Part shown: piece after piece, positions 30,281 to 43,600 of the stretch
How the letters are laid out: each line of letters begins with the position of its first letter
How positions within the stretch are numbered: position 1 is the stretch's first letter
Assembly (NCBI RefSeq): GCF_006345805.1
Contig: NC_043003.1
Location: 16,058,001-16,122,000 of the forward strand
DNA length: 64,000 nt
From: Octopus sinensis
Taxonomy: Eukaryota
Reading direction: 5' to 3'
Translations under genes and position numbers: made by a program
Notes under the pieces: generated by a model
Seen by the model: the letters and a program-made list of their open reading frames with translations, nothing else
The model's database searches: none
Told to the model about the DNA's origin: nothing

Positions 30281-30542
30281 ATAATTTCAACAATTGAGGG
30301 TAAAATTAATTAATTAATTAATCAATTTCACCAAGTATTCAGTATGCAAAGGGACCATTTAAGGCAAATTCAAATTATTACATTATATAAAAGGGCTTAG
30401 TAAAATAAATTACTTTGCCGCATACTGAACTCGTTAGAAATAGCAGCTAAAAAAACTATTTCTAACACTTAAAGAAAACCTCTCTCATATAGTGCTTGCT
30501 CAATTCAACCCAAGAAAGTATGAGGGTAGAGACATTAAAAAA

Positions 30543-30629
30543 TCAAATGCAAAGGTTATTTGAGTACGTACGTTTCAAGATTAGCCAAATTCGACCCTTC
30601 TCTCATCAGCTCAGAATGCCCTTGTTTGA
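30543..30629 (-). ncRNA. Type I hammerhead ribozyme, left-arm copy 1 (copy 2 at 31096-31182)
   Basis: Exact reverse complement of the + strand motif (tgagtacgtacgtttcaaga...tctcatcagctca). Confidence 0.9.
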
Positions 30630-37600: not shown

Positions 37601-40600
37601 CTTCAGAAGCGATAACAAGCCGAAAGGGTATGCTCCCATTTTCAGTGTTTTCAAACTCAAACAAGGGCATTCTGAGCTGATGAGAGAAGGGTCGAATTTG
37701 GCTAATCTTGAAACGTACGTACTCAAATAACCTTTGCATTTGATTTTTTAATGTCTCTACCCTCATACTTTCTTGGTTGAATTGAGCAAGCACTATATGA
37801 GAGAGGTTTTCTTTAAGTGTTAGAAATAGTTTTTTTAGCTGCTATTTCTAACGAGTTCAGTATGCGGCAAAGTAATTTATTTTACTAAGCCCTTTTATAT
37901 AATGTAATAATTTGAATTTGCCTTAAATGGTCCCTTTGCATACTGAATACTTGGTGAAATTGATTAATTAATTAATTAATTTTACCCTCAATTGTTGAAA
38001 TTATAATTCATCTCTCTCTACTTAATTGTCTTGGATTTTACCGAAAAAAAGCGTAGTGTTTGCTGATTTTAACCCACGCTGGTGGAAAGGGGAGAACAGA
38101 AATCTTTCTCTTGCATATTTGAGTTAGCTAGCACTGTTAGTTGGGAACAGATCTTCAGAAGCGATAACAAGCCGAAAGGGTATGCTCCCATTTTCAGTGT
38201 TTTCAAACTCAAACAAGGGCATTCTGAGCTGATGAGAGAAGGGTCGAATTTGGCTAATCTTGAAACGTACGTACTCAAATAACCTTTGCATTTGATTTTT
38301 TAATGTCTCTACCCTCATACTTTCTTGGGTTGAATTGAGCAAGCACTATATGAGAGAGGTTTTCTTTAAGTGTTAGAAATAGTTTTTTTAGCTGCTATTT
38401 CTAACGAGTTCAGTATGCGGCAAAGTAATTTATTTTACTAAGCCCTTTTATATAATGTAATAATTTGAATTTGCCTTAAATGGTCCCTTTGCATACTGAA
38501 TACTTGGTGAAATTGATTAATTAATTAATTAATTTTACCCTCAATTGTTGAAATTATAATTCATCTCTCTCTACTTAATTGTCTTGGATTTTACCGAAAA
38601 AAAGCGTAGTGTTTGCTGATTTTAACCCACGCTGGTGGAAAGGGGAGGACAGAAATCTTTCTCTTGCATATTGAGTTAGCTAGCACTGTTAGTTGGGAAC
38701 AGATCTTCAGAAGCGATAACAAGCCGAAAGGGTATGCTCCCATTTTCAGTGTTTTCAAACTCAAACAAGGGCATTCTGAGCTGATGAGAGAAGGGTCGAA
38801 TTTGGCTAATCTTGAAACGTACGTACTCAAATAACCTTTGCATTTGATTTTTTAATGTCTCTACCCTCATACTTTCTTGGGTGAATTGAGCAAGCACTAT
38901 ATGAGAGAGGTTTTCTTTAAGTGTTAGAAATAGTTTTTTTAGCTGCTATTTCTAACGAGTTCAGTATGCGGCAAAGTAATTTATTTTACTAAGCCCTTTT
39001 ATATAATGTAATAATTTGAATTTGCCTTAAATGGTCCCTTTGCATACTGAATACTTGGTGAAATTGATTAATTAATTAATTAATTTTACCCTCAATTGTT
39101 GAAATTATAATTCATCTCTCTCTACTTAATTGTCTTGGATTTTACCGAAAAAAAGCGTAGTGTTTGCTGATTTTAACCCACGCTGGTGGAAAGGGGAGAA
39201 CAGAAATCTTTCTCTTGCATATTTGAGTTAGCTAGCACTGTTAGTTGGGAACAGATCTTCAGAAGCGATAACAAGCCGAAAGGGTATGCTCCCATTTTCA
39301 GTGTTTTCAAACTCAAACAAGGGCATTCTGAGCTGATGAGAGAAGGGTCGAATTTGGCTAATCTTGAAACGTACGTACTCAAATAACCTTTGCATTTGAT
39401 TTTTTAATGTCTCTACCCTCATACTTTCTTGGGTGAATTGAGCAAGCACTATATGAGAGAGGTTTTCTTTAAGTGTTAGAAATAGTTTTTTTAGCTGCTA
39501 TTTCTAACGAGTTCAGTATGCGGCAAAGTAATTTATTTTACTAAGCCCTTTTATATAATGTAATAATTTGAATTTGCCTTAAATGGTCCCTTTGCATACT
39601 GAATACTTGGTGAAATTGATTAATTAATTAATTAATTTTACCCTCAATTGTTGAAATTATAATTCATCTCTCTCTACTTAATTGTCTTGGATTTTACCGA
39701 AAAAAAGCGTAGTGTTTGCTGATTTTAACCCACGCTGGTGGAAAGGGGAGAACAGAAATCTTTCTCTTGCATATTTGAGTTAGCTAGCACTGTTAGTTGG
39801 GAACAGATCTTCAGAAGCGATAACAAGCCGAAAGGGTATGCTCCCATTTTCAGTGTTTTCAAACTCAAACAAGGGCATTCTGAGCTGATGAGAGAAGGGT
39901 CGAATTGGCTAATCTTGAAACGTACGTACTCAAATAACCTTTGCATTTGATTTTTTAATGTCTCTACCCTCATACTTTCTTGGTTGAATTGAGCAAGCAC
40001 TATATGAGAGAGGTTTTCTTTAAGTGTTAGAAATAGTTTTTTTAGCTGCTATTTCTAACGAGTTCAGTATGCGGCAAAGTAATTTATTTTACTAAGCCCT
40101 TTTATATAATGTAATAATTTGAATTTGCCTTAAATGGTCCCTTTGCATACTGAATACTTGGTGAAATTGATTAATTAATTAATTAATTTACCCTCAATTG
40201 TTGAAATTATAATTCATCTCTCTCTACTTAATTGTCTTGGATTTTACCGAAAAAAAGCGTAGTGTTTGCTGATTTTAACCCACGCTGGTGGAAAGGGGAG
40301 AACAGAAATCTTTCTCTTGCATATTGAGTTAGCTAGCACTGTTAGTTGGGAACAGATCTTCAGAAGCGATAACAAGCCGAAAGGGTATGCTCCCATTTTC
40401 AGTGTTTTCAAACTCAAACAAGGGCATTCTGAGCTGATGAGAGAAGGGTCGAATTTGGCTAATCTTGAAACGTACGTACTCAAATAACCTTTGCATTTGA
40501 TTTTTAATGTCTCTACCCTCATACTTTCTTGGTTGAATTGAGCAAGCACTATATGAGAGAGGTTTTCTTTAAGTGTTAGAAATAGTTTTTTTAGCTGCTA

Positions 40601-43600
40601 TTTCTAACGAGTTCAGTATGCGGCAAAGTAATTTATTTTACTAAGCCCTTTTATATAATGTAATAATTTGAATTTGCCTTAAATGGTCCCTTTGCATACT
40701 GAATACTTGGTGAAATTGATTAATTAATTAATTAATTTTACCCTCAATTGTTGAAATTATAATTCATCTCTCTCTACTTAATTGTCTTGGATTTTACCGA
40801 AAAAAAGCGTAGTGTTTGCTGATTTTAACCCACGCTGGTGGAAAGGGGAGGACAGAAATCTTTCTCTTGCATATTTGAGTTAGCTAGCACTGTTAGTTGG
40901 GAACAGATCTTCAGAAGCGATAACAAGCCGAAAGGGTATGCTCCCATTTTCAGTGTTTTCAAACTCAAACAAGGGCATTCTGAGCTGATGAGAGAAGGGT
41001 CGAATTTGGCTAATCTTGAAACGTACGTACTCAAATAACCTTTGCATTTGATTTTTTAATGTCTCTACCCTCATACTTTCTTGGGTTGAATTGAGCAAGC
41101 ACTATATGAGAGAGGTTTTCTTTAAGTGTTAGAAATAGTTTTTTTAGCTGCTATTTCTAACGAGTTCAGTATGCGGCAAAGTAATTTATTTTACTAAGCC
41201 CTTTTATATAATGTAATAATTTGAATTTGCCTTAAATGGTCCCTTTGCATACTGAATACTTGGTGAAATTGATTAATTATTAATTAATTTTACCCTCAAT
41301 TGTTGAAATTATAATTCATCTCTCTCTACTTAATTGTCTTGGATTTTACCGAAAAAAAGCGTAGTGTTTGCTGATTTTAACCCACGCTGGTGGAAAGGGG
41401 AGAACAGAAATCTTTCTCTTGCATATTTGAGTTAGCTAGCACTGTTAGTTGGGAACAGATCTTCAGAAGCGATAACAAGCCGAAAGGGTATGCTCCCATT
41501 TTCAGTGTTTTCAAACTCAAACAAGGGCATTCTGAGCTGATGAGAGAAGGGTCGAATTTGGCTAATCTTGAAACGTACGTACTCAAATAACCTTTGCATT
41601 TGATTTTTTAATGTCTCTACCCTCATACTTTCTTGGGTTGAATTGAGCAAGCACTATATGAGAGAGGTTTTCTTTAAGTGTTAGAAATAGTTTTTTTAGC
41701 TGCTATTTCTAACGAGTTCAGTATGCGGCAAAGTAATTTATTTTACTAAGCCCTTTTATATAATGTAATAATTTGAATTTGCCTTAAATGGTCCCTTTGC
41801 ATACTGAATACTTGGTGAAATTGATTAATTAATTAATTAATTTACCCTCAATTGTTGAAATTATAATTCATCTCTCTCTACTTAATTGTCTTGGATTTTA
41901 CCGAAAAAAAGCGTAGTGTTTGCTGATTTTAACCCACGCTGGTGGAAAGGGGAGAACAGAAATCTTTCTCTTGCATATTTGAGTTAGCTAGCACTGTTAG
42001 TTGGGAACAGATCTTCAGAAGCGATAACAAGCCGAAAGGGTATGCTCCCATTTTCAGTGTTTTCAAACTCAAACAAGGGCATTCTGAGCTGATGAGAGAA
42101 GGGTCGAATTTGGCTAATCTTGAAACGTACGTACTCAAATAACCTTTGCATTTGATTTTTTAATGTCTCTACCCTCATACTTTCTTGGGTTGAATTGAGC
42201 AAGCACTATATGAGAGAGGTTTTCTTTAAGTGTTAGAAATAGTTTTTTTAGCTGCTATTTCTAACGAGTTCAGTATGCGGCAAAGTAATTTATTTTACTA
42301 AGCCCTTTTATATAATGTAATAATTTGAATTTGCCTTAAATGGTCCCTTTGCATACTGAATACTTGGTGAAATTGATTAATTAATTAATTAATTTACCCT
42401 CAATTGTTGAAATTATAATTCATCTCTCTCTACTTAATTGTCTTGGATTTTACCGAAAAAAAGCGTAGTGTTTGCTGATTTTAACCCACGCTGGTGGAAA
42501 GGGGAGAACAGAAATCTTTCTCTTGCATATTTGAGTTAGCTAGCACTGTTAGTTGGGAACAGATCTTCAGAAGCGATAACAAGCCGAAAGGGTATGCTCC
42601 CATTTTCAGTGTTTTCAAACTCAAACAAGGGCATTCTGAGCTGATGAGAGAAGGGTCGAATTTGGCTAATCTTGAAACGTACGTACTCAAATAACCTTTG
42701 CATTTGATTTTTTAATGTCTCTACCCTCATACTTTCTTGGGTGAATTGAGCAAGCACTATATGAGAGAGGTTTTCTTTAAGTGTTAGAAATAGTTTTTTT
42801 AGCTGCTATTTCTAACGAGTTCAGTATGCGGCAAAGTAATTTATTTTACTAAGCCCTTTTATATAATATATATGTATATATATATATATATATATATATA
42901 TATATATATATATATATATATGTATATGTATACATGCATATATATATGTATGTGTATATATATATATATATATATATATATATATATATGTATATATATA
43001 TATATATATATATATATAGAGAGAGAGAGAGAGAGAGAGAGAGAGAGAGACGTATGTATTATATCTTCATATATAAGTCATAACTGTACTGTGCCATCGA
43101 CAGTGACGCAGGTGCCTGCGCTCTTGCGATCTAATTTTGTGAAATTGCTGTAGTTTCATCCCCTTCAGCTTTATTACCTATCATATGCCTATATATATAT
43201 ATATATATATATAGACATTGATTTCTCTTTGTGTATATATATATATATATATATATATAATATATATAATATATGTATATATTTATGCACATGTATATAT
43301 ACATACATATAGTTACATACGTAGAAATATGTAATGTACATATATTTGTATGTATAAAAGGGTATGTCTGTATTTATGTGTATATATATAAGTGCACTTG
43401 TGTGTGTCTGAATGTGTGTGTTTTTGTGTGCATGTGTGTGTGTGCATGTGTGTGTGTGTGAATGTGTGTGTGTGTGCATGTGTGTGTGTGTGTGTGTCAG
43501 ATTATGTACCTGTGTGACGATTTCTTTTGGCACGTTTGGAGATTGCTCTACCGATTGACATAGTTGAATTTTATTATAGTAATAATAATAATAATAATAA

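Follow-up and report, generated by a model that had tools for sequence, protein, structure and literature searches.

The subject of this analysis is a 64,000-nt stretch of the Octopus sinensis genome (RefSeq assembly GCF_006345805.1, contig NC_043003.1, positions 16,058,001 to 16,122,000 of the forward strand), which we call the window and to which all coordinates below refer, and within it a 12.6-kb block of almost identical 553-bp repeats carrying 23 hammerhead ribozyme motifs. We conclude that this block is probably a non-autonomous metazoan retrozyme of the kind that lacks long terminal repeats (LTRs), a non-LTR retrozyme, present as one very young multicopy insertion. The reading is carried by a hammerhead core that is complete in every motif, by a short palindromic helix III built on the plan of validated retrozymes, and by an insertion layout, with an abutting inverted and truncated arm between (TA)n tracts, that is described for Penelope-like elements (PLEs). 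The retrozyme class is already known; on this reading the array is a further example of it, with a somewhat aberrant ribozyme that Rfam misses.

Architecture of the repeat block and its junctions

The anatomy of the locus, the motif and the junctions can be read directly from the sequence, and the RNA folds are predictions. BLAST of a reference unit (31649-32201, 553 bp, used for all comparisons) against the window delimits an uninterrupted block at 30280-42870, with repeats on both strands and a unit length of 550-553 bp; Tandem Repeats Finder (TRF) was run with a maximum period of 500, at which an array of 553-bp units is not reportable. Most of the block is a head-to-tail array on the plus strand (31312-42870, from BLAST and pattern search), which consists of a partial unit (217-553), 20 full units (31649-42685) and a second partial unit (1-186), and which holds 21 hammerhead motifs in phase. 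Next to it stands an inverted, 5'-truncated arm of 1,027 bp on the minus strand (30280-31306; BLAST, pattern search and sequence), made of the reverse complement of unit 1-285, one full unit and the reverse complement of unit 365-553. This arm is 100% identical to the reference unit over its full length and holds two motifs, at 30565-30609 and 31118-31162, both on the minus strand and both found by pattern search. Sequence and BLAST coordinates place a 5-base filler, TGTTC, at the head-to-head junction of the two arms (31307-31311). Across the window, the pattern CTGATGA-N(10-40)-GAAACGTACGTH occurs 23 times (21 on the plus strand, 2 on the minus strand), against 0.00 expected from shuffles.

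The locus is not a uniform 23-mer; it has 20 full and 2 partial plus-strand units and is probably a very young multicopy insertion. A first-pass annotation, made from the letters of this DNA, had described a tandem array of 23 nearly identical units of 551-553 bp at 30281-42867. The continuous block, the near-identical unit and the number of motifs all hold; the head-to-tail order does not hold throughout, as 30280-31306 is inverted and takes two of the motifs with it, and the insertion architecture, namely the inverted 5'-truncated copy and the (TA)n on both sides, was absent from that description. The same annotation had considered a 23-mer unusually long for such an element. Published arrays number 62 units in coral, 180 in axolotl and 300 in beetle, with 75% of families at seven units or fewer, and a block of ~22 units is large, not exceptional.

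Both outer ends of the block lie in microsatellites. The left flank (29843-30279; TRF rows 29843-30280 and sequence) is a compound (GTAT)n/(TA)n microsatellite, the presumed target site, and the transition into the repeat reads ...TATATGTA|TATAATTTC; in terms of the unit, ...TATATGTA|TATAATTTCAACAATTGAGGG is the reverse complement of unit ...CCCTCAATTGTTGAAATTATA, ending at unit position 285. The right flank (42871-43018; TRF and sequence) is a (TA)n microsatellite followed by (AG)n at 43018-43050. Here the unit, which reaches ...AGCCCTTTTATATAAT at position 186, runs on as ATATATGTATATA..., so that unit sequence ...CCCTTTTATATAAT blends into the (TA)n of the flank. At both outer ends, UA-rich spots of the unit (~180-186 and ~281-285) share TATA microhomology with the flank. 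These outer ends are the 3' ends of the two arms, and their 5' ends meet head-to-head at 31306/31312, where the arms are out of phase (unit 365 versus unit 217) and where filler and flanks together form a 10-nt direct duplication, TTTCTGTTCT (31289-31298 and 31303-31312). An origin of the inverted arm as a symmetric fold-back read artefact is excluded by this difference in phase and by the templated 10-nt duplication.

The family has left a second trace in the window. BLAST of the unit finds an old, 5'-truncated solo fragment on the minus strand at 23254-23395, in which unit 185-285 is aligned with 81/105 identities (77%, E=4e-13) and in which a weaker match to the unit hairpin pushes the homology back to about unit position 143. 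The fragment has (TA)n on both sides, and it stops at unit 285 and passes into (TA)n exactly as the inverted arm does. It lies outside the ribozyme part of the unit and therefore cannot test conservation of the motif. Judged by its alignment, this one additional, diverged copy in 64 kb appears to show dispersal of the family. Two independent insertions with a common 3' end in (TA)n would point to target-primed RNA copying rather than to local satellite growth.

Real divergence between the units is effectively nil. They differ by 1-base deletions in short homopolymers and at a single A/G site (unit position 375), where G is present in five non-adjacent units. The leftmost 3,028 bp (30280-33307), which comprise the inverted arm and the first 3.6 plus-strand units, match the 553-bp unit without a single deviation; between 33308 and 42870 each unit shows 1-3 deviations, nearly all of them 1-base homopolymer deletions. 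This sharp change at 33307/33308 could reflect assembly tiles, polishing or later duplication. We considered A375G as an ADAR footprint and rejected this as weak, the 5' neighbour being G, the site single and the assembly noisy.

The hammerhead motif and the monomer RNA

The motif is best described from one example on the plus strand, at 32149-32208, as given by sequence and predicted fold. The 5' strand of helix I (AUU-C-UGAG, 32149-32156) leads into the core CUGAUGA (32157-32163). Helix II (32164-32189) is built of GAGA/UCUU, a 2x2 internal loop, GGUCG/UGGCU and an AAUU loop. It is followed by GAAA (32190-32193) and by helix III, ACGUACGU (32193-32200), in which an A-U and a C-G pair are capped by GUAC. 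A17 stands at 32201, with predicted cleavage between 32201 and 32202, and the 3' strand of helix I (CUCAAAU, 32202-32208) completes the motif. The layout is that of type I, with helix I open (plus an extension), helix II closed at 4 + 5 bp and helix III reduced to 2 bp and the GUAC loop. The full core, with CUGAUGA, GAAA, A15.1-U16.1 and H17=A, and the three helices are kept in 23/23 motifs, and the structural definition of a type I hammerhead (core, A15.1-U16.1, H17, three helices) thus describes the motif, as the first-pass annotation had proposed for each unit. An internal loop interrupts helix II after 4 bp and helix I after 7 bp, which is close to the canonical 4/6 geometry. G·U accounts for 4/9 of the helix II pairs, and for this reason helix II can form only in plus-strand RNA. 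The helix III segment ACGUACGU is a perfect 8-nt palindrome, and two such segments are predicted to pair at p~0.8 in a transcript with two ribozymes.

To put a number on chance, we used a descriptor consisting of CUGANGA, a helix II of at least 4 bp, GAAA, a helix III of at least 2 bp with A15.1-U16.1, H17, and a helix I of at least 4 bp. In the window it matches the 23 array copies only. Its background in Markov sequence (2 x 30 Mb) is 0.03-0.1 matches per Mb per strand, which corresponds to a chance of ~1e-4 per 553-bp unit, and a fully palindromic helix III was seen in 0/4 of the simulated matches.

Cleavage after A17 would release a 553-nt monomer from the plus strand (31649-32201; sequence and predicted fold), the same monomer that had been suggested in the first-pass annotation. 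Its minimum free energy (MFE) is -157.7 kcal/mol versus -121.3 for shuffles (z=-5.86), that of the complementary minus strand gives z=-4.08, and 59% of the monomer bases are paired in the predicted fold, at a GC content of 34.5%. Two further stems pointed out earlier, the 11-bp hairpin at 31747-31780 and the pair ttcagtatgc (31784-31793)/gcatactgaa (31866-31875), are present and formed in this fold. In the global MFE structure the first seven bases of the unit pair just upstream of CUGAUGA as helix I, and helix II forms; CUGAUGA, GAAA and the helix III segment are unpaired. The modelled monomer fold is thus one that presents the ribozyme core as an open three-way junction.

The unit appears to be non-coding. 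Its longest open frames span 69-76 codons; these open reading frames (ORFs) match no Pfam family and returned zero homologues from very large protein collections, covered by exact look-ups, a word-indexed search and HMMER over 1.84 billion representatives. Inspection of the unit by eye for an internal RNA polymerase III promoter (B-box/A-box) gave poor matches only. Among metagenome contigs a single one, PJEL010020635.1 (4227-4276, minus strand), contains GCTGATGAG-N-GAAACGTACGTAC; helix II and tandem structure are both absent from it, and we rejected it as a chance match that illustrates the background of such patterns.

A series of observations weighs against a functional retrozyme ribozyme at this locus. 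The Rfam check that the first-pass annotation had proposed is negative: neither Hammerhead_1 (RF00163) nor its relatives match the unit at gathering score, and none of the hammerhead families appears even at E<=10 on slices of 1.4 kb and 106 nt. A covariance model of our own, built from four validated retrozyme hammerheads, scores the array motifs at 10.5 bits (E~1.2), which is not significant. The pair 10.1-11.1 is G·U, not G-C; G10.1-C11.1 at the base of helix II has been called highly conserved (PMC4209133), and the axolotl Amex2 ribozyme works with a U·U mismatch at this position. Helix II, with its 26 nt, is twice the usual length and interrupted, helix I is bulged, and none of the canonical contact nucleotides of loop 1 and loop 2 is recognisable in the motif. 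The local 116-nt fold is no stabler than its shuffles (z=+1.57), and the MFE structure of a two-ribozyme transcript is an extended duplex, which would be inactive. (RNAcofold of two ribozyme domains gave a trivial full duplex and was set aside as uninformative.) The descriptor is loose: hundreds of chance matches are expected in a Gb-size genome, and therefore the motif alone is not proof and its placement in a repeat matters. The units, being identical, provide no covariation evidence, and no relatives of the unit were retrieved through its ORFs or the metagenome scan. Finally, the window contains no PLE reverse transcriptase, and the array ends do not fall at the predicted cleavage site. The earlier description of a retrozyme-like element is borne out in part, by unit size, low GC, lack of ORFs, folded monomer and helix III plan, and is left wanting by covariance models that do not reach significance.

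A second, unrelated hammerhead-like motif lies on the minus strand at 21745-21802, directly upstream of a short interspersed element (SINE) head, and reads ACAACU-CUGAUGA-GAACC(caauaa)GGUUC-GAAAA-UCAAUUGA-A-AGUUGU. Its helix II is a perfect 5-bp stem that includes G10.1-C11.1, its helix I has 6 bp, and the place of helix III is taken by an 8-nt palindrome; the motif is the top match of our retrozyme model (19.8 bits, E~0.002), with 12.7 bits for Rfam Hammerhead_3. It has no U16.1-H17 in register and is therefore probably a dead relic. An 80%-identical copy at 44296-44354 (minus strand) has its core mutated to CUGAAAAGA.

Origin of the array

Non-LTR retrozymes are established in cnidarians, molluscs (mussel), arthropods, amphibians, fishes and reptiles. 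They are described by low GC (<45-50%), a non-coding sequence and the lack of LTRs, primer-binding site and polypurine tract, and the array shares this profile together with the highly base-paired monomer. As in mussel Mg353, coral Amil224 and axolotl Ax353 and Ax330, the repeats are head-to-tail and carry one type I hammerhead each. Tandem units, unit size, a short palindromic helix III, low GC, absence of coding capacity and a compact fold are thus all found here. Helix III agrees as well. Cervera and de la Pena 2020 (PMC7229834) give in their supplement self-cleaving constructs from mussel, axolotl and coral, with CUGAUGA-GUC...GAC-GAAAC-GCGC-GUC in mussel, ...GAAAC-ACGU-GUA in axolotl Ax353, ...GAAAC-AU-GUC in axolotl Ax330 and ...GAAACA-GUAC-UGUC in coral. 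The retrozyme plan of GAAAC, palindrome and GUH is the plan of the array motif, GAAAC-GUAC-GUA, with its A15.1-U16.1 pair, C-G pair and 4-nt palindrome; the GUA triplet is common to the array and Ax353, and the GUAC loop is common to the array and coral. Metazoan type I hammerheads typically have such a weak, short helix III with a loop that is palindromic, and they are most active as dimers in tandem transcripts.

There are also differences. At 553 nt, the monomer exceeds the 170-400 nt of PMC7229834 and falls inside the 51-972 bp of a recent preprint (10.64898/2026.07.22.740005). Helix II has 26 nt, an internal loop and G·U closing, whereas non-LTR retrozymes have 4 bp and a loop with G-C. 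The putative ribozyme, unlike those of the known metazoan families, is missed by Rfam, and BLAST finds no similarity to the mussel and coral retrozymes outside the core. Tandem repeats with type I hammerheads and a weak helix III are also known from newt satellite 2, schistosome Sm-alpha and cave-cricket pDo500, whose ribozymes perform best as double hammerheads. These differ from the array in host lineage, unit length and sequence, and they are experimentally proven, in contrast to the predicted case described here.

The layout of the insertion points to PLEs. According to Craig et al. 2021, hallmarks of PLE insertions are heavy 5' truncation, head-to-tail insertions that may be partial or multicopy, a 5'-truncated copy in inverted orientation next to the 5' end, and a bias towards microsatellites, with (TA)n favoured by Naiads, and the tandem and inverted structures that result trouble assemblies. 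Head-to-tail copies, an abutting inverted 5'-truncated copy and a (TA)n target are all found at this locus. The array thus shares insertion layout, (TA)n target and 5' truncation with PLEs and their derivatives (PMC8557442, PMC4209133, 10.64898/2026.07.22.740005); as in PLE hammerheads, helix III is small and palindromic and helix II is longer. PLEs differ in carrying an ORF for reverse transcriptase and GIY-YIG, both of which the array lacks, and the published (TA)n preference is that of Naiads, which, unlike the array, have no canonical hammerheads.

We infer that the array is transcribed, that its RNA cleaves itself and is circularised, and which type of enzyme copies it, along the following lines. 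A plus-strand transcript would contain a type I hammerhead at each unit junction, whose helix I pairs the last bases of a unit with the first bases of the unit that follows. Through the palindrome ACGUACGU in the weak helix III, neighbouring ribozymes could pair into an extended helix III, giving a double hammerhead. Cleavage after GUA, by double or by co-transcriptional single hammerheads, would yield 553-nt monomers with a 5'-OH and a 2',3'-cyclic phosphate, which a host RtcB-type ligase may circularise. Circles or multimers of this RNA would be the template of a PLE reverse transcriptase, with a nicked (TA)n target, annealed to UA-rich stretches at unit positions ~180-186 and ~281-285, as the primer. 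From one primer ~21 units would be made, and from the second DNA end a shorter, opposite copy ('twin priming'), with the cDNA ends joined by microhomology. Ostertag and Kazazian reportedly described such 'twin priming' inversions for L1 in 2001. In L1, as in the scheme proposed here, priming takes place at both outer ends, and microhomology links a 5' segment in inverted orientation to a 3' segment in direct orientation; unlike in L1, a PLE reverse transcriptase would here copy RNA in multimeric or circular form, and the parallel is an analogy only.

The architecture fits the view of Li et al. 2026 (10.64898/2026.07.22.740005), argued from sequence similarity, in which PLE pseudo-LTRs are the source of animal retrozymes and mobility is by rolling circle. 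We hold more tentatively, as possible and still rather doubtful, the proposal that the locus records one integration event, in which ribozyme RNA was copied ~21 times round by a PLE-like reverse transcriptase, twin-primed in a broken (TA)n tract and closed by a templated microhomology join. If true, the structure of the locus would be direct evidence of the rolling-circle, PLE-dependent mobilisation that has so far only been hypothesised for animal retrozymes.

A different origin, which we judge unlikely, is that of an ordinary satellite or segmental repeat grown at the DNA level, in which the hammerhead-like motif has no function today, having arisen by chance or surviving as a dead relic. 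Unequal exchange, rolling-circle extrachromosomal DNA re-inserted at a fragile (TA)n by microhomology-mediated end joining, and replication template switching, which would have given rise to the inverted arm, are possible routes to it, and microhomology and a templated 10-nt duplication are also made by DNA repair. Such an origin would suit a motif that fails all Rfam hammerhead models and our own covariance model, with its G·U at 10.1-11.1 and weak local fold, and an array that ends away from the cleavage site; chance descriptor matches are, moreover, to be expected somewhere in a Gb-size genome. The chance of ~1e-4 per 553-bp unit is, however, much smaller, and lower still with an 8-nt palindromic helix III whose plan is specifically that of validated retrozymes. 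Also against a DNA-level satellite are a helix II that is RNA- and strand-specific through its G·U pairs, a whole-monomer fold predicted to show the core as an open three-way junction, a dispersed 5'-truncated copy with the same 3' end, and the layout described for PLE-type reverse transcription.

Errors of assembly could bear on copy number and on the inverted arm. Over-expansion or mis-joined long reads could have produced them from a locus that is in truth shorter or purely head-to-tail, and all inter-unit differences but one are 1-base homopolymer deletions, typical of long-read consensus error; the step from zero deviations in 30280-33307 to at least one per later unit is a possible tile boundary, and PLE-type tandem and inverted structures are a known assembly trouble. 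We nevertheless regard an artefact as very unlikely, since the inverted junction is asymmetric, with a 10-nt templated duplication, and not a perfect fold-back palindrome, both outer ends pass cleanly into microsatellites with microhomology, and 12.6 kb fits within one long read; the unit and its motif stand even if the copy number is wrong. A reading of the block as the pseudo-LTR of an autonomous PLE is hardly credible. PLE pseudo-LTRs do carry hammerheads and form tandem and inverted structures, but no reverse transcriptase or GIY-YIG ORF lies in or beside the array, the unit ORFs (up to 76 aa) have neither Pfam match nor homologue, and twenty consecutive 553-bp units leave no space for a 3-4 kb body; the sole RVT_1 match in the window is a short fragment, by inspection similar to long interspersed elements (LINEs), 5 kb away at 25089-25382.

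A non-autonomous non-LTR retrozyme thus remains the probable identity of the array. If active, it would represent a very young retrozyme family with near-identical units, probably from a lineage without explicit retrozyme description: we found no report of retrozymes in cephalopods among the retrozyme literature searched, where only the PLE paper mentions both terms, and the squid genome paper gives 235 Rfam Hammerhead_1 matches and Penelope elements. Its ribozyme would be a variant that escapes Rfam, with a long interrupted helix II and G·U at 10.1-11.1, and censuses of retrozymes based on Rfam, whose scans miss this variant, may undercount. The anatomy of the junctions, with ends in (TA)n, an inverted truncated arm and a templated join, ties a retrozyme array to the PLE insertion signature, and this link is independent of the sequence-similarity argument of the 2026 preprint.

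Other features of the window

The remainder of the window is rich in degenerate repeats. A SINE-like repeat of ~240 bp is present in at least 15 copies with 73-92% identity, among others at 6821-7404, 9705-10197, 16234-16346, 20410-20649, 22148-22376, 44718-44873, 53632-54127 and 61610-61988. Two or three partial copies often follow each other head-to-tail (as at 9705-10154, with a TRF period of 185), and partial tandems of this sort are also an insertion habit of the PLE type. At 21462-21737, two tRNA-like SINE heads form a head-to-head inverted pair with 82% self-complementarity over 279 bp. This head presumably resembles the abundant octopus SINE, a lead and not a test; a literature search with SINE k-mers of the window gave no match. 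A 5S rRNA-like sequence on the minus strand at 20332-20453 reaches 49.1 bits (gathering score 38), has several broken helix I pairs and is probably a pseudogene disrupted by insertion of a SINE-like repeat, whose start overlaps its 5' end.

Fragments of mariner/Tc1-type transposases lie at 7892-8125 (minus strand) and at 13554-13790, 59070-59366 and 63139-63489 (plus strand). The last, an N-terminal helix-turn-helix mariner fragment, has its closest match in an amphipod copy (76% identity) and is 63% identical to a SETMAR-like protein of an ant, a similarity pattern consistent with horizontally spreading mariners. Degenerate reverse-transcriptase remnants, LINE-like by inspection, are found on the minus strand at 25089-25674 and 4815-5590. 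The RVT_1 match within the former, on the minus strand at 25089-25382, contains a YADD motif, and the LINE reverse-transcriptase fragment has one match, to an ENA contig at 70% identity. The protein matches of the mariner and LINE fragments are uninformative as to taxon. The minus-strand ORFs at 4815-5590 have no Pfam match and show a CxxC...ET...H...C pattern like that of the zinc-knuckle region of non-LTR ORF2. Microsatellites are extremely dense in the window (144 TRF rows in 64 kb), whose GC content is 35%, and include (TA)n, (AC)n, (TATG)n, (AGAT)n, (CTT)n and (TTA)n tracts of up to several hundred bp.

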